IMG/VR virus record: IMGVR_UViG_3300046787_000408
Span: 235,984-299,983 of that record
Length of the DNA stretch: 64,000 nucleotides
Strand: one strand, 5' to 3'
Position 1 is the first letter of the stretch, and each line of letters opens with the position of its first letter. The notes below the pieces were generated by a model that saw nothing but the letters and a program-made list of their open reading frames with translations, was not told the origin of the DNA and did no database searches. A program made the position numbers and the translations under genes. Positions 53,030 to 59,411 of the stretch are shown here, in pieces.

Positions 53030-53380
53030 AAACACTTAGCAACAAACGATCGAGTAGTTGCGTAGAATTCCTTAAAAATTTACATGTATGATTACCCGGC
53101 AAGACAACACTTGACACGATTTTGATGTTCGGTGATAACAGTCCGTAATGCTGTGAAGCAAAACGTAGCCGGGGATCATATAAAAATGCACATTAGTTAG
53201 AAAGTCCAGCTAAGTTGAGCGTCCCCTGTAAAACGGGGAAAGAGCTAGAATTGCAGGTTAGTATTGCTTTTGTGTGTTTTTATATGATTTTTGATGCACT
53301 ACTTGCCTGAGCGAAAAACTCGTGGTAAACTACAAGAGACAGAGGGTTCGAATCCCTGGGACTGGTAGTGTGTCTTTTAT

Positions 53381-53455
53381 ACTGGGTTCGTCTATCGGTT
53401 AGGACATCAGGTTTTCAACCTGAGAAGACGGGTTCGACTCCCGTACCCAGTACCA
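53381..53455 (+). tRNA. tRNA-Glu(TTC)
   Basis: Cloverleaf; loop TTTTCAA; CCA. Confidence 0.9.
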
Positions 53456-53519
53456 AGTTTATGAGTTCGTCTAGAAACCGGTAAATTGTAGTTTAGTCTA
53501 CAAGCTCGTAATTGATCAT

Positions 53520-53594
53520 GGTGCGTTCATATAATGGTCATTATCCTGGATTGTCTATCCAGAGACGGGAGTTCGATTCTCCCACGCATCGCCA
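53520..53594 (+). tRNA. tRNA-Asp(GTC)
   Basis: Cloverleaf; loop TTGTCTA; GCCA. Confidence 0.9.
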
Positions 53595-53601
53595 AGTTAC
53601 T

Positions 53602-53690
53602 GGATCTTGTTCCCCATTGCCGGCTGTAACCCGGTAGGCATTGTCAAGTGGGGTGGTTGCCAAGTAGTTCGATTCTATCAAGATCCACCA
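53602..53690 (+). ncRNA. Non-canonical tRNA-Tyr(GTA)-like RNA
   Basis: 8-bp acceptor GGATCTTG/CAAGATCC, 4-bp T stem, ACCA; GCCGG-CTGTAAC-CCGGT arm; no normal D arm. Confidence 0.55.
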
Positions 53691-53766
53691 GTTTTATAGG
53701 AGAGTCGCTGCGAAGCGAATTCTTAAACGACCCGTAGAACTCCCGGGCGTCCTGTAGTTAGTATAT

Positions 53767-53851
53767 GGAGAATCCGCCGCAATGGTGTGGCAGGGGACTG
53801 TAAATCCTCCGACTTAGGTCATGACTGGTTCGATCCCAGTATTCTCCACCA
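53767..53851 (+). tRNA. tRNA-Tyr(GTA)
   Basis: Cloverleaf with variable arm; loop CTGTAAA. Confidence 0.9.
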
Positions 53852-53857
53852 ATTTTT

Positions 53858-53997
53858 GTGGTAAGTTTGGTTGACAGGCTATTTGACTGTATGCGTAGCA
53901 GGATTGCAAACCCGAGGGGCATATGGCGATGGGAAGTGATATCACCCGTTTGTAAAAACAGATAGCTAGGCAGGTTCGAATCCTGTTTACTACACCA
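53858..53997 (+). ncRNA. Expanded (140 nt) tRNA-like RNA with Cys(GCA)-like loop
   Basis: GTGGTAA/TTACTAC acceptor, GCAGG-TTCGAAT-CCTGT T arm, ACCA; internal TTGCAAA loop. Confidence 0.5.
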
Positions 53998-54099
53998 AGT
54001 TTATGTCTGGGTCTGACATGGTGTTTCTGATGCGATTGATCACGCAAAGGAGAATGTGGCTCGATACCACGCCCGGCGCCAAATACTAAGGCAATAACA

Positions 54100-54282
54100 A
54101 GTACTAGAGTAGATGGAAACCGACCCATGCGAGACTGCGTGGGCTTCACACTTAGAATGTGACGATGCGAAAGTAAGTCGGTCCAGTAGGGTAAGGAAAA
54201 GTGTTGCTGGCGGAAAAAGCTGCTACCAGACAGAAGTTAAGCGGGCCTAGGCTGACAGTTTAACGCCGTGTACTCTGGAACT
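54100..54282 (+). ncRNA. Orphan structured RNA
   Basis: Closing stem CTAGAGTA/TACTCTGG; internal ACCGAC/GTCGGT and CCCATGC/GCGTGGG. Confidence 0.4.
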
Positions 54283-54351
54283 AATTTATGCTCTATTAGC
54301 TCAATTGGGAGAGGAAAGTAGAGCACGGACTAAATATAGTAGAGGTCTACT

Positions 54352-54741
54352 ATGTTAAAAATTTTTAAATGTCTTTACTGTCAAAAAGAAAATCCGTGCA
54401 AAAAGAATCACATGCACAAGTACTGCAATAATATGTGTCAGAGATTGCACAGCATTACCGAAGCGATGAATGGTGATTCTCCCACTAAAGGAGTTGCACA
54501 AAACTATATGCGGAAATTTGTTGAATACAAATGTGTACATTGTGGAATAGGTTCTGAGTACAACGATAAACCTATAACATTGCAAATTGATCATATTAAT
54601 GGAGTTCGGACTGATCACAGAAAAGTAAATCTGCGATGGTTATGCCCGAATTGTCATTCCCAAACTGAGACTTGGGGATATAAGAATGTTTCAGATGAAG
54701 GTAAACGCAAAATACAACTTGCGTTAAACGGTAAGAAATAG
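54352..54741 (+). CDS. HNH endonuclease (free-standing, homing-type)
   Basis: CVHC...LQIDHING...NLRWLCPNCHSQT; AT-rich; inside the tRNA array. Confidence 0.9.
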   Translation: MLKIFKCLYCQKENPCKKNHMHKYCNNMCQRLHSITEAMNGDSPTKGVAQNYMRKFVEYKCVHCGIGSEYNDKPITLQIDHINGVRTDHRKVNLRWLCPNCHSQTETWGYKNVSDEGKRKIQLALNGKK

Positions 54742-54815
54742 GTCTCAAAGTGTTCATGGACGCACACAACACTGTCACTGTTGAAGAAGGGGATCGTTAC
54801 CCCTTGAGACCGCCA
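54741..54815 (+). tRNA. tRNA-Asp(GTC), second copy
   Basis: Loop CTGTCAC; atypical T loop ATCGTTA. Confidence 0.85.
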
Positions 54816-54822
54816 AGTTAAT

Positions 54823-54900
54823 GGGCGATGACTGTTGTAAAGGATAACAGGCGGCAGTAACTCTGCCGTGACAGTGGTTCGATTCCACTATCGTCCACCA
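54823..54900 (+). ncRNA. tRNA-like RNA with Ala-type acceptor (G3:U70, A73)
   Basis: GGGCGAT/ATCGTCC-A-CCA; T arm AGTGG-TTCGATT-CCACT; 7-bp arm with 5-nt loop instead of a normal anticodon arm. Confidence 0.6.
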
Positions 54901-54907
54901 TGAATAT

Positions 54908-55016
54908 GGGTTGTCAAGGAAGGTCACATGCACGGTGAGTAGCCGTAGGAGCATTATCGAGTGTGCGCCACCGCACTCTTGGTCAGACATGGGTTCAAGT
55001 CCCATACAATCCACCA
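54908..55016 (+). ncRNA. 109-nt tRNA-like RNA with Ala-type acceptor
   Basis: GGGTTGT/ACAATCC-A-CCA; GAC plus ATGGG-TTCAAGT-CCCAT. Confidence 0.55.
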
Positions 55017-55020
55017 AGTT

Positions 55021-55242
55021 TTGTTGTAGTGTTAGCAAGTGAAGTCACGCTAGCGAGGTTTCTTCGAAGGACCGAGTCAGTAGAAGGTTGCGGGTTCGAT
55101 GCCCGACTGGTCGCTTGAGTGGGACTGGTATACATGATGGCGTATCAACTGGATGAATCTCAAGTAACGTACCGAGTCCTAGCCCGGGCTATATGCAAAT
55201 AGGTGAATGGTGTCAATAACGATGGTGACACTACTGCAACAA
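55021..55242 (+). ncRNA. Orphan structured RNA
   Basis: Closing stem GTAGTGTTA/TGACACTAC; internal T-loop hairpin CGGG-TTCGATG-CCCG. Confidence 0.4.
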
Positions 55243-55251
55243 ATTCAACAT

Positions 55252-55326
55252 GTCGCATTAGACTTCTGGTGAGGTCATCACCCTTTCAAGGTGACCAGAC
55301 GGGATCGTAACCCGTATGCGACTCCA
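55252..55326 (+). tRNA. tRNA-Glu(TTC), second copy
   Basis: Loop CTTTCAA; T loop ATCGTAA. Confidence 0.85.
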
Positions 55327-55421
55327 TTGATAAACACACTTACAGATCCGCCCGAGTAGTAAGGGAGACAGCGACTAACCGTTGAAGGACTGTTTAAAAG
55401 TGTGTTTTTCAATGGAACAAT

Positions 55422-58131: not shown

Positions 58132-58139
58132 GACAACAT

Positions 58140-58215
58140 GCGGGTGTAGCTCAGTTGGTAGAGCACTACCTTGCCAAGGTAGATGTCAGGGGTTCGAACC
58201 CCCTTACCCGCTCCA
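58140..58215 (+). tRNA. tRNA-Gly(GCC)
   Basis: Canonical cloverleaf. Confidence 0.93.
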
Positions 58216-58222
58216 TGTTTGT

Positions 58223-58297
58223 TCCTCGATAGCTCAGTGGTAGAGTGCCGGACTGTTAATCCGTTGGTCCCTGGTTCGAGCCCAGGTCGAGGAGCCA
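58223..58297 (+). tRNA. tRNA-Asn(GTT), second copy
   Basis: Canonical cloverleaf. Confidence 0.92.
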
Positions 58298-58304
58298 TAA
58301 TTTA

Positions 58305-58379
58305 GCCCTTGTATCCTTAGTGGTAGAGGTCCTGTTTTGTAAGCAGGGTGTGGTGGTTCGATTCCATCCTGGGGCACCA
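58305..58379 (+). tRNA. tRNA-Thr(TGT)
   Basis: Loop TTTGTAA. Confidence 0.85.
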
Positions 58380-58434
58380 CAAACATAGTCAATACTCTCC
58401 CTTGACGAGCTAGGTCACTAGACTATTTTCTTTC

Positions 58435-58508
58435 GCCCTATTAGTATAATGGTATTACACCTGTTTTGTAATCAGGTTACGGCAGTTCGATTCTGTCATG
58501 GGGCACCA
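58435..58508 (+). tRNA. tRNA-Thr(TGT), second copy
   Basis: Loop TTTGTAA. Confidence 0.88.
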
Positions 58509-58559
58509 CTTTCAAGCCTATACTCAATCCTGCCGTGACGACTGTCCCTGGGCTTTTAT

Positions 58560-58636
58560 CTTTGTATGGCGCAGCCTGGTAGCGCACTAGTCTGGGGGAC
58601 TAGGGGTCGCAGGTTCGAACCCTGCTACAAAGACCA
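58560..58636 (+). tRNA. tRNA-Pro(GGG)
   Basis: Loop CTGGGGG. Confidence 0.9.
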
Positions 58637-58645
58637 ACTTTCAAT

Positions 58646-58723
58646 CTCTGTGTAATGTCAATCTGGTAGACGGCCTGATCTGGAGTCAGGAGGCTGTACG
58701 TTCGAATCGTACCATGGAGACCA
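58646..58723 (+). tRNA. tRNA-Pro(TGG), atypical C33/A37
   Basis: CCTGA-TCTGGAG-TCAGG. Confidence 0.8.
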
Positions 58724-58730
58724 ATTCAAC

Positions 58731-58806
58731 GCCGCGGTAGCTCATCAGGTAGAGCAGCAGACTGAAAATCTGTGTGTGGCTGGTTCGAGTCCAGCTCGTG
58801 GCACCA
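58731..58806 (+). tRNA. tRNA-Phe(GAA)
   Basis: Loop CTGAAAA. Confidence 0.92.
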
Positions 58807-58899
58807 TTTTATCCTTGAGTTAAGCGGGGCCGTATACACCCTTGCCAATAGAGTTAGTAATGTGTTCTGCAACAGACACCTCAGGGGCCAATTTACGAT

Positions 58900-58977
58900 G
58901 CGTCTCTAGTTCAACTGGATAGAACACCGGCCTACGAAGCCGTGAGGTTGGGGATTCGAATTCCTCGGGACGCACCA
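58900..58977 (+). tRNA. tRNA-Arg(ACG)
   Basis: Loop CTACGAA. Confidence 0.9.
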
Positions 58978-59041
58978 AAAAACAGTTGACAACATTCTGT
59001 AATTGTTGTATAATTAGAACTTAAACAAAAGAGGTAACACT

Positions 59042-59065
59042 ATGAAACGTTCAGGTAAACGATAG
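59042..59065 (+). CDS. Mini leader ORF MKRSGKR
   Basis: Promoter TTGACA-17-TATAAT (58986-59014); SD AAGAGG; stop abuts hairpin 59065-59101. Confidence 0.5.
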   Translation: MKRSGKR

Positions 59066-59127
59066 TGTCATCCTAGACCCCCGTATGGTCCTGGATGGCA
59101 CGTAAAAGACAATTCTTTACGATCCAT

Positions 59128-59204
59128 CCCTTCAAGATGTTACTGGTTAGCATACCGGACTCTTAATCCGAGAAGTCTGAGTTCGAATCTCAGTGGAGGG
59201 ACCA
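59128..59204 (+). tRNA. tRNA-Lys(CTT)
   Basis: Loop CTCTTAA. Confidence 0.82.
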
Positions 59205-59207
59205 TAT

Positions 59208-59285
59208 GGGGGTATAGTGTTAACGGTTTAGCACAGCGGACTTTTAATCCGCCAGGTCAGGGTTCGAATCCCTGTGCCCCTACCA
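59208..59285 (+). tRNA. tRNA-Lys(TTT)
   Basis: Loop CTTTTAA. Confidence 0.9.
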
Positions 59286-59411
59286 TATGCAAACACATTA
59301 ACCTGCGAAAAAGAATTCCGATGCATAATCGGCCAGTGTATAGTGTGTTTACATATGGTATTAATCTATCGACGGGTAGACACCATGCTGGGGAGTAATT
59401 AACCTCAGGAA

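Follow-up and report, generated by a model that had tools for sequence, protein, structure and literature searches.

A conserved 20-bp RNA stem framing variable small RNAs between the tRNA genes of uncultivated freshwater jumbo phages

The five inverted repeats located between the RNA genes of the window (i.e., the whole stretch of 64,000 nucleotides that was analysed) are true copies of one undescribed, conserved 20-bp RNA stem. This stem, hereafter referred to as the scaffold, is the frame of very variable small RNAs and is placed as a spacer between tRNA genes. The scaffold would most likely be a signal or scaffold for cutting RNAs out of a long tRNA transcript. The following features can be distinguished in the window (R1 scores are those of covariance model R1; fold z refers to dinucleotide shuffles):

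E1, scaffold hairpin: 53174..53289, + strand; variant core AAAAAUGCACA/UGUGUGUUUUU; 78-nt payload; fold z -5.35
E1b, degenerate sixth copy: 53293..53374 (approximate), + strand; directly after E1, in tandem
E2, scaffold hairpin: 55322..55417, + strand; R1 44.5 bits; fold z -5.68
GOLLD RNA, 3' conserved domain: 56362..56825, + strand; Rfam match, 192.6 bits (gathering score 150)
E3, scaffold hairpin: 56828..56925, + strand; R1 40.1 bits; directly 3' of the GOLLD RNA
E4, 'empty' scaffold hairpin with a 5-nt loop: 57469..57511, + strand; R1 39.6 bits; fold z -5.87
E5, most canonical copy: 59281..59360, + strand; R1 65.1 bits, E = 2e-13 in the window scan; fold z -6.10
Strong sigma-70-type promoter span over the RNA-gene region: 53001..59014, + strand; consensus matches

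Architecture, position and distribution of the hairpins

A preliminary description of this DNA had listed five imperfect inverted repeats. A repeat finder returned four of them at the same positions, with 89-95% complementarity, and the more imperfect fifth one (56829-48/56905-24) was found by a motif scan and by the covariance model. All five hairpins have one common architecture, composed of: (i) an outer stem of 8-9 bp, rich in AU (in the typical case, ACCAUAUN pairs with NAUAUGGU), which usually starts in the discriminator-CCA of the upstream tRNA; (ii) a 1x1 non-Watson-Crick pair, mostly A.C; (iii) an invariant AAACACA/UGUGUUU helix; and (iv) a U.G wobble, followed by the variable loop. 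On inspection of 155 copies, the stem base is ACCAUAU/AUAUGGU and the irregularity corresponds to the 1x1 pair, with no bulged bases. In the window, the folded stems measure 19-23 bp and the loops, as already described, range from 5 to 78 nt and are mutually unrelated. Compared with dinucleotide shuffles, four of the five hairpins have a much better fold (z -5.4 to -6.1), E3 being weaker (z -1.3), and each of the five fills the whole gap between two RNA genes. One common factor probably recognises the invariant core together with the wobble-type pairs on its two sides; in addition, these parts probably provide shared homology for payload exchange.

E1 (R1: 30.8 bits, E = 6.7e-5; + strand score above that of the - strand) is the first structured RNA downstream of a sigma-70-like promoter cluster. 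Its payload does contain, at 53223-53239, the CCCC-UGUAAAAC-GGGG hairpin that had been likened to a Tyr anticodon arm. Nevertheless, the loop has 8 nt, not 7, and the likeness is probably incidental, because related payloads do not have it. Right after it, E1b conserves an inner stem of about 11 bp (GAUGCACUAC/GUAGUGUGUC) but not the rest of the stem, and was not matched by R1 in the window scan; its payload, a cloverleaf-like RNA in which the T-arm is canonical, is homologous to full elements of three other contigs (L100, L186 and L241). E2, whose payload is Y-shaped with two hairpins, lies between tRNA-Glu (55252-55326, ARAGORN) and tRNA-Ile(UAU) (55422-55513). E3 follows the GOLLD RNA, in which a tRNA-Asn (56424-56497) is embedded; the match to the full-length GOLLD model (RF02032) reaches as far as 56825, and E3, from 56828 on, is outside the modelled GOLLD structure. 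E3 is in turn followed by tRNA-Met (56934-57007), and E4 by tRNA-Ala (57512-57586). The 5' arm of E5, which has a C.A mismatch ahead of AAACACA, starts with the last acceptor base, the discriminator and the CCA of tRNA-Lys(UUU) (59208-59285; Rfam tRNA match 59208-59282, CCA at 59283-59285). Downstream of both E1 and E5 there are tRNA-like RNAs not called as tRNAs.

The hairpins keep a regular register with the ends of these RNAs. Regarding the 5' side, the arm starts at the discriminator-CCA of the tRNA that precedes it or, behind GOLLD, at the CCA-like end of that RNA, and 71 of the 78 tRNA-adjacent copies share one start offset, covering N72-N73-CCA, behind 13 tRNA species. The preliminary description had several repeats starting inside the preceding CCA: this is the case for E2 and E5, where the element begins at the mature tRNA 3' end, whereas the Rfam GOLLD match terminates in CCUCCA and E3 starts 3 nt beyond it. 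Regarding the 3' side, 70 of the 155 copies end between -3 and +9 nt from the next tRNA start, that is, at the expected RNase P site (in the window: E2, +5; E3, +9; E4, +1). Perfect (12/12) promoter matches occur at 53001, 57063 and 58986, with a fourth one at 59748, just outside the 53001..59014 span, and 11/12 matches are located at 55721 and 55906 (+ strand); no comparable promoter was found on the - strand of the RNA-gene region.

Over the whole 299,983-bp genome, the motif scan placed the core at five sites only, and R1 also gave exactly five sites in the whole 300-kb genome (E = 1e-12 to 3e-4); in the window scan, the best R1 match beyond the five had 12.6 bits (E = 2.2). This five-site specificity is far beyond chance. 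Beyond this phage, the scaffold occurs in at least 117 related viral contigs; the 155 distinct copies lie mostly within tRNA arrays, and the carriers form a large group of freshwater jumbo phages that are uncultivated. When GOLLD 3' flanks were fetched from IMG/VR, all 26 distinct ones carried the scaffold, with differing payloads. For at least 43 of the 155 copies, neither end is next to a recognised RNA gene, in arrays whose many odd tRNA-like genes are missed by ARAGORN, and a hairpin with the same core is also present in a tRNA-less, prophage-like contig family. No Rfam 15 family overlapped E1-E5 (cmscan of 52600-59800 at gathering score and at E <= 5), and the scaffold was absent from the four cultured phages that were searched whole (two DNA-polymerase relatives and two with a tRNA-like match).

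Selection on the helix and exchange of the payloads

Among the stem cells, 91% are paired versus 81% in shuffles (none of 500 shuffles reached the observed value), and pairing drops to 31-55% when the partners are slid. Double changes occur at ten stem pairs. Watson-Crick pairs make up 89-99% at stem positions -11 to -5 of the 155 distinct copies, and positions -11, -10 and -7 to -5 show two to four pair types each. These patterns indicate that the helix is under selection. As for the strand, G.U pairs outnumber A.C pairs 88 to 21 on the tRNA-sense strand, three special positions left out (p = 6e-11); the minimum free energy is lower on the sense strand in 107 of the 155 copies; T-loop-like motifs appear in 15 payloads in sense and in one in antisense; and no inverted payload was found among the copies compared. 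Because of the compensatory changes, the G.U excess, the T-loop orientation and the + strand promoters, the fold is assigned to the tRNA-sense transcript.

These data bear on an earlier suggestion, namely, that the repeats are protein-binding operators. As DNA operators, or as promoter-associated palindromes, they would control the transcription of the RNA-gene region. Such a role would agree with a conserved sequence in inverted orientation and with the several strong promoters of the region, but the half-sites are spaced 9-159 nt apart, the elements are located only at junctions between RNA genes and not at promoters, the outer arms covary rather than being conserved, and a strand-specific G.U asymmetry belongs to RNA or to a single strand. 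Such a role is, in consequence, extremely improbable.

In contrast to the stem, the payloads vary greatly: the 155 copies comprise around 110 unrelated sequence families. The framed spacer RNAs have 10-160 nt (median payload, 54 nt). Two payloads fold as cloverleaves with T-arms and 15 of the 155 have a T-loop motif, while most are not tRNA-like. The preliminary description had called the repeats cassettes with payloads, and payload exchange between conserved stems was indeed seen: (i) in the E2 slot, the relative G009 has stems identical to those of the window around an unrelated payload; and (ii) in the E4 slot, the payload of the G007 orthologue, inserted exactly in the loop, has about 60 nt and is cloverleaf-like with a T-arm, as against 5 nt in the window. 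The E5 slot and its stems are the same in G007, and a relative of the E5 payload is found in L196. The same payload and core may also appear with other outer stems, behind other genes. As for presence or absence between relatives, whole elements are syntenic in the window, G007 and G009, and the payloads alone differ.

Such exchange could reflect a DNA-level cassette or mobile system, in which the core repeats would be recombination sites (integron attC-, MITE- or PeSL-like) and the RNA fold would be secondary. This possibility is improbable. The unrelated payloads between identical E2 stems (window and G007 versus G009), the E4-slot payload present in one relative and missing in the other, the combination of one payload and core with different outer stems behind different genes, and the identical register behind 13 different tRNA species are what it would predict. 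However, the whole elements are vertically inherited syntenic orthologues; selection on the transcript is indicated both by the G.U excess on one strand and by the constant orientation of the payloads; and no dedicated enzyme would be needed for the exchange, since ordinary homologous or microhomology recombination at the core would account for it. On inspection, the attC R-box consensus is absent. The more specific proposal of miniature insertion elements targeting tRNA 3' ends is likewise not supported, at least as transposons, since target duplications are not visible (the five window copies show no direct repeats at their flanks) and the families searched yielded neither a transposase nor an integrase or reverse transcriptase: Y1_Tnp (PF01797) is absent from this genome (G000) and from G001 and G006, and PF00589 (IntI-type tyrosine recombinases) and RVT_1 are absent from G000.

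A different question is whether the payloads matter at all. It might be that the stems are purely cis-acting processing or insulating devices (for instance, for RNase III entry, for guarding neighbouring tRNAs against misfolding or for holding the CCA end), so that the helix alone matters and the loops are neutral, drifting and replaceable filler, partly made of scraps of tRNA genes. The stem is able to stand alone, as E4 keeps a near-perfect stem despite its 5-nt loop, and the extreme payload diversity points in the same direction. Compared with shuffles, the payloads alone are only weakly more structured as a class (mean z -0.47) and, therefore, many may be filler; the T-arm fragments in loops could be recombination debris of neighbouring tRNA genes. 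Nevertheless, near-empty loops are rare (just 2 of the 155 copies have less than 20 nt beyond the stem), the same payload recurs nearly unchanged across different genomes and slots, and the invariant core sequence would be needless for a generic dsRNA site. Besides, E2 and its G007 orthologue differ by six substitutions, each of them in a loop, and by one compensatory pair, so that the payload stems are avoided, and in one payload family an A-U pair is replaced by G-C in a compensatory manner. These comparisons indicate that the payloads are under constraint in at least some families, and a purely cis-acting role, though possible, is unlikely.

Predicted release from tRNA transcripts

The interpretation to which we assign a probability of about one half is that the spacers are small RNAs, framed by a clamp helix, on tRNA-sense polycistronic transcripts, from which host tRNA-processing nucleases would release them. 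On the 3' side, the cut would be made by host RNase P. On the 5' side, two routes can be envisaged: (a) an endonuclease of the RNase Z/BN type would cut just after the CCA ('tRNA punctuation') and release the whole hairpin; or (b) RNase III would cut near the central mismatch, after which the weak AU-rich lower stem would melt, leaving the tRNA trailer and leader open to trimming. By either route, the upstream and downstream tRNAs would mature and the free small RNA would consist of the common stem plus a variable apical domain, in some cases a tRNA-like cloverleaf. There are precedents for these reactions: RNAs flanked by tRNAs are freed by RNase P and RNase Z, the viral tRNA-hairpin fusion of MHV68 being cut apart by tRNase Z (PMC4536327), and Escherichia coli RNase III reportedly has a part in T4 tRNA maturation (PMC4810235).

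Processing stems that release small RNAs, one of the roles initially put forward, are thus the one best supported by the anatomy (sense-strand fold, about 20 bp, ends at mature RNA ends). An RNase III-type enzyme is a candidate for this cut. The stem has the length of an RNase III substrate (around 20 bp, about two helical turns), is formed from flanking sequences and shows covariation, but RNase P together with RNase Z/BN fits the geometry equally. No RNase III is encoded in this phage (G000) or in two complete relatives (G001 and G006), nor was any dsRNA-binding domain (dsrm) found in G000; RNase III for such cleavage would have to be supplied by the host.

The invariance of the 7-bp sequence and its flanking non-canonical pairs is explained by neither RNase III nor RNase Z. 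A more speculative reading, which we consider rather unlikely, is that of a modular small-RNA 'display', where a dedicated factor would read the invariant stem and more than 100 interchangeable apical domains would be swapped by recombination at the core. If so, a phage or host factor would recognise AAACACA/UGUGUUU flanked by A.C and U.G, and the apical domains (some of them tRNA mimics) could act, e.g., as decoys or regulators in phage-host conflict, possibly jointly with the neighbouring GOLLD nanocage RNA.

Comparison with known systems

The RNase III stalks of rRNA operons, the intervening sequences (IVS) of 23S rRNA and the early-RNA sites of T4/T7 are similar to the scaffold in that a helix of about 20 bp is formed from flanking sequences on a polycistronic stable-RNA transcript. 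In the IVS of 23S rRNA, which are excised without religation, the stems are conserved and the loops vary greatly, being specific to each strain. The scaffold, in contrast, frames inter-tRNA spacers of 10-160 nt, not rRNAs; its 7-bp sequence is invariant and bordered by A.C and U.G pairs, features that are not required of an RNase III substrate; and its stem begins exactly at the tRNA CCA.

With tRNA-punctuated release (MHV68 fusions, mitochondria, engineered tRNA-gRNA arrays) the scaffold shares a hairpin placed directly against a viral tRNA 3' end and, in many cases, against the 5' end of the tRNA that follows (PMC4536327) and, therefore, tRNA end-processing enzymes alone would excise it. But the scaffold comes from a bacterial virus, its CCA is encoded and part of the stem, and the hairpins are longer, with large variable apical domains and no evidence of miRNA-like use. 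Furthermore, some copies stand after GOLLD or in tandem, with no tRNA on one side.

Bacterial Y RNAs (YrlA) also pair their 5' and 3' ends in a long stem and have a tRNA-like domain, just as some scaffold copies have a tRNA-like far end with a T-arm, and their Ro-binding motif is GGUCCGA-like (PMC4201824). Against identity with Y RNA/YrlA speak the AAACACA core without a GGUCCGA-like motif, the absence from G000 of a Ro60/TROVE gene (PF05731, detected in control genomes) and the lack of any RF02553 match on the elements, where sub-threshold matches fell on true tRNAs alone.

According to its DNA polymerase, this phage belongs to a T4-related replication lineage. T4 itself produces 'species 1/2', i.e., small stable RNAs of unknown function that are co-transcribed and co-processed with the phage tRNAs; these are not known to be framed by a shared conserved stem or to have any sequence or scaffold similarity to the elements described here.

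Finally, integron attC sites and the PeSL of T4-like phages are imperfect inverted repeats around a variable centre, with cassette-like content between conserved flanks, and the scaffold resembles them in total length and cassette-like behaviour. attC sites carry R''/R' boxes (RYYYAAC ... GTTRRRY) at the stem base and extrahelical bases. Against identity with integron attC speak the absence of PF00589 from G000 and of R''/R' boxes from the 155 copies inspected. The scaffold differs from attC in having neither an integrase nor the R-box consensus, in carrying payloads that are non-coding RNAs of 10-160 nt instead of genes, and in a fold that is selected on the transcribed strand.

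The scaffold hairpins and their genomic setting

The five inverted repeats are copies of a real, conserved RNA element (the scaffold), in which a common stem frames a variable RNA (the payload). This element is absent from the literature searched and from Rfam 15, where no family matches E1-E5. A repeat finder recovered four of the repeats at the positions reported in the preliminary description, with 89-95% complementarity, while the fifth and more imperfect one (E3) was found via a motif scan and a covariance model.

Scaffold hairpins of the window
53174-53289, + strand: hairpin E1
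55322-55417, + strand: hairpin E2, between tRNA-Glu and tRNA-Ile
56828-56925, + strand: hairpin E3, between GOLLD and tRNA-Met
57469-57511, + strand: hairpin E4, with its 3' end 1 nt before tRNA-Ala
59281-59360, + strand: hairpin E5, with its 5' start within the CCA of tRNA-Lys(UUU)

Compared with dinucleotide shuffles, the fold z-scores are -5.4 to -6.1 for four elements and -1.3 for E3. The covariance model of the scaffold (R1), built from 32 related copies of which two are window copies, picks out E1-E5 and nothing else in the window (E 2e-13 to 7e-5), the next-best candidate reaching 12.6 bits (E 2.2); across the whole 300-kb genome, it finds the same five sites and no others. A degenerate sixth copy, E1b, lies in tandem 3' of E1 (about 53293-53374). 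The resemblance of the E1 payload to a Tyr anticodon arm, pointed out in the preliminary description, is probably incidental.

The window is the final 64 kb of one 299,983-bp virus record. Since the T4-type DNA polymerase of this phage shares 47-51% identity with its counterparts in Agrobacterium phage Atu_ph07 and Sinorhizobium phage Phosso, the source is an uncultivated jumbo phage. Between 53 and 61.3 kb lies a dense RNA-gene region with 36 of the 38 tRNAs called by ARAGORN in the window.

Other RNA genes and promoters
50344-50879, + strand: permuted tmRNA of the two-piece type (Rfam tmRNA_permuted, 97 bits; alpha_tmRNA, 56 bits), just 5' of the RNA-gene region
56362-56825, + strand: GOLLD RNA (Rfam match), with tRNA-Asn embedded at 56424-56497
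53001, 57063, 58986 and 59748, + strand: sigma-70-type promoters TTGACA-17-TATAAT, 12/12
55721 and 55906, + strand: sigma-70-type promoters, 11/12

The strong promoters of the region lie in every case on the + strand, and their scattered, perfect or near-perfect sequences suggest very strong transcription by the host RNA polymerase in several units. GOLLD sits 3' of the promoter at 55906, probably extends 5' to about 55940, and has a tRNA-end-like 3' end (CCUCCA); an 81-codon ORF (56040-56285) is probably part of its variable 5' half and not a gene. E3 was rejected as a part of GOLLD itself: the GOLLD model ends before E3. The cryo-EM paper on GOLLD makes no mention of such a hairpin. As regards the tmRNA, two relatives (G001 and G002) also carry a permuted form, with the tag peptide ANDEKFLMAA, and this hints at a host likewise using permuted tmRNA.

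Several further features accompany the array: (i) five stretches (53597-53695, 53860-53998, 54000-54075, 55790-55875 and 59375-59470) that combine ends resembling an acceptor and canonical T-arms (GGTTCGAATCC type) with large insertions or unusual arms, which ARAGORN and Rfam leave uncalled and which could be either tRNA-like RNAs or insertion-bearing tRNAs; (ii) a 92-nt tRNA-Ile(UAU) (55422-55513, + strand) with an extra segment of ~17 nt 3' of the anticodon arm, also found at 10582-10673 of another locus (L093), a gene of equal length and anticodon being called in G002; (iii) an ORF for a 129-aa HNH endonuclease within the tRNA array (54352-54741, + strand; Pfam HNH_3, E 1.4e-5), flanked by tRNA-5'-half-like sequence (about 54290-54320) and an odd ARAGORN "tRNA-Asp" (54741-54815), which may be a homing endonuclease, perhaps inside an interrupted tRNA gene; and (iv) auxiliary-type genes on either side of the RNA region (46374-48478, 50917-51537 and 61625-63109), coding for an AhpC/TSA peroxiredoxin, a class II aldolase, a CMD-family protein, an OmpA-domain protein and a 494-aa radical SAM protein.

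Anatomy, strand and distribution of the scaffold

The core noticed in the repeats is conserved across genomes: 155 distinct copies were collected, and all percentages of anatomy refer to them. As the copies were gathered via core-derived patterns, the collection is biased to canonical cores. From the outside inwards, the scaffold consists of: (i) an outer stem of 8-9 pairs, mostly A-U (typically ACCAUAUN/NAUAUGGU); (ii) a 1x1 position with A.C (45%), C.A (11%), U.U (5%) or a Watson-Crick pair (35%); (iii) the AAACACA/UGUGUUU helix, in which six of the seven pairs are 97-100% conserved while the third, an A-U, is replaced by G.U or G-C in 15% of copies; (iv) a U.G wobble next to the core (70%; otherwise C-G or U-A); and (v) two or three more pairs, followed by the payload, whose length ranges from 9 to 159 nt with a median of 54.

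The helix is backed by covariation, because 91% of its cells are paired versus 81% in shuffles (0/500 reach the observed value), pairing drops to 31-55% when the partners are slid, and double changes occur at ten pairs. The sequence evidence indicates that the scaffold folds as RNA and does so in the tRNA-sense transcript. The strand preference of R1 is not independent evidence, since its training copies were all sense-oriented; independent evidence comes instead from G.U counts, MFE comparison, T-loop orientation and the promoters. An A.C on the sense strand is a G.U on the opposite strand and, outside the three special positions, 88 G.U versus 21 A.C are counted on the sense strand (p = 6e-11). 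Likewise, the sense strand gives the better fold in 107 of the 155 copies, and T-loop-like motifs in payloads number 15 in sense and 1 in antisense. The possibility that the repeats are protein-binding operators was rejected in view of their variable half-site spacing, their location and this RNA-type asymmetry.

With the DNA polymerase as query, hundreds of IMG/VR contigs were retrieved at 85-97% identity; the radical SAM neighbour, used for the same search for relatives, gave distant loci only. A search with the conserved 3' end of GOLLD yielded 34 loci, and the scaffold is present in 26/26 distinct sequences 3' of GOLLD, with quite different loops. A two-core-arm pattern led to at least 117 further loci; the full scaffold occurs in 97 of the matches listed, and tRNA genes accompany it at 75 of these, mostly as arrays of 3-36. 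A strict pattern, run against 185,579 prokaryotic species genomes, matched five short MAG contigs and no others (L258-L262, labelled Planktophila, Crocinitomicaceae, Gammaproteobacteria and Polynucleobacter), which are arrays of 9-21 tRNAs with the hairpins of the phage scaffold. Probably, phage contigs were here binned into bacterial MAGs, so that the labels may or may not point to hosts; as the five bacterial matches are phage-like tRNA arrays, the motif is not a host chromosomal feature.

Among the cultured phages searched, no isolate with the scaffold was identified: R1 found no match in four whole genomes, namely the two DNA polymerase relatives (Phosso and Atu_ph07) and two phages with a tRNA-like match (RsoM2USA and Limnohabitans phage DC31), the positive control having worked, and in a megablast of the region against cultured phages the tRNAs alone matched.

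Another group of hairpins, at L193:6462-6550 and 17 further loci (including L173, L179, L189, L204, L217, L218, L220, L222, L223, L234, L238, L240, L242 and L243), has the same AAACACAUU/AGUGUGUUU core, one conserved payload and a different outer stem, CAUUUCA/UGAAAUG (R1, 39.5 bits). None of these contigs, several of which bear IMG isolate-genome-style record numbers, has more than one called tRNA gene; in L193, the hairpin lies just 5' of a small ORF.

Payloads as exchangeable cassettes

Among the 155 copies there are ~110 payload families unrelated to one another, and comparison of syntenic sites indicates that payloads behave as exchangeable cassettes. In the E2 slot, the window and a relative (G007) have one payload in common, while another relative (G009) has an unrelated one, yet its stems and upstream tRNA are identical. 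The E4 slot has a 5-nt loop in the window versus ~60 nt in G007, added exactly at the loop. One payload stands behind GOLLD in one genome and behind tRNA-Lys in another, and it is combined with different outer stems.

The preliminary description put forward miniature insertion elements; a transposon or an integron was considered here. This reading is weakened: searches of this phage's genome for an integrase, a Y1 transposase and an RT were negative, and the copies are syntenic orthologues. The attC consensus of integrons is missing as well and, among the collected copies, no payload is inverted, which further speaks against an integron, an invertase or a transposon. A Y RNA was rejected too (no TROVE gene, no motif, no model match).

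Substitution patterns show that some payloads are under constraint. The E2 payload of the window differs from that of G007 by six substitutions, each in a predicted loop, and by one compensatory change from U-A to C-G; in a four-member payload family, a double change turns A-U into G-C. By folding, the E1b and G007-E4 payloads are small cloverleaves with canonical T-arms atop the long stem. Taken as a class, however, payloads exceed shuffles only slightly in structure (mean z -0.47). Small hairpins with A-rich loops (UGUAAAAC, CGUAAAA, CGAAAAA) occur at a similar position in E1 and E1b-family payloads (window 53223-53239 compared with L100, L186, L241 and window 53310-53322), and the 12-mer GTAGTATTGCTT is common to the E1 and E3 payloads.

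Register with RNA ends and possible processing

In 71 of the 78 copies with a called upstream tRNA (13 species, Lys being the commonest), the start offset is identical, the first bases of the 5' arm being N72, the discriminator and CCA. At the other side, 70 of the 155 copies end from 3 nt inside to 9 nt before the next tRNA and, in 27 of these 70, the final four bases of the 3' arm (GGU plus one) are the first four of that tRNA.

The hairpin would thus be a flush filler of the spacer between two mature RNA ends, with RNase P freeing its 3' side. Judging by the established course of tRNA 3' end formation in E. coli, a stable 20-bp hairpin right behind the CCA would otherwise block 3' exonucleolytic trimming, and some endonucleolytic step is therefore required. 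Two options can be differentiated: (i) an RNase Z/BN-type cut directly 3' of the CCA, the type of release described for MHV68 viral tRNA-hairpin fusions and engineered tRNA-flanked RNAs (PMC4536327); or (ii) an RNase III cut close to the mismatch in mid-stem, followed by melting of the weak, AU-rich lower part and exonucleolytic trimming back to the CCA, RNase III having been reported to take part in T4 tRNA maturation (PMC4810235). The proposal that the repeats are processing stems releasing small RNAs agrees with the register. No RNase III is encoded by the phage or two complete relatives, nor is a dsRBD encoded by this phage, so the processing enzymes would be those of the host. In any case, neither route accounts for the invariance of the 7-bp core and of the wobble-type pair on either side of it; conjecturally, they could be both a recognition site for a common factor and the homology where payloads recombine.

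Phage tRNA arrays are usually treated as lists of tRNAs. Here, the array spacers form a second conserved layer, in which a common stem frames very diverse, exchangeable small RNAs; the 3' end of GOLLD, which has, to our knowledge, no known function, is marked by the scaffold as well. If the hairpins were released as stable RNAs, a widespread group of freshwater jumbo phages would possess small RNAs of a new and abundant class, all sharing one built-in handle, and this would also be a natural bacterial counterpart to tRNA-punctuated RNA release. The invariant core offers a precise bait for a partner factor, and the covariance model a means of annotating scaffold elements in metagenomes. The invariant core together with the cassette-like payload diversity, for which we know of no precedent, is what sets the scaffold apart from those RNAs that, by analogy, it would work most like: processing-stem or tRNA-punctuated spacer RNAs.
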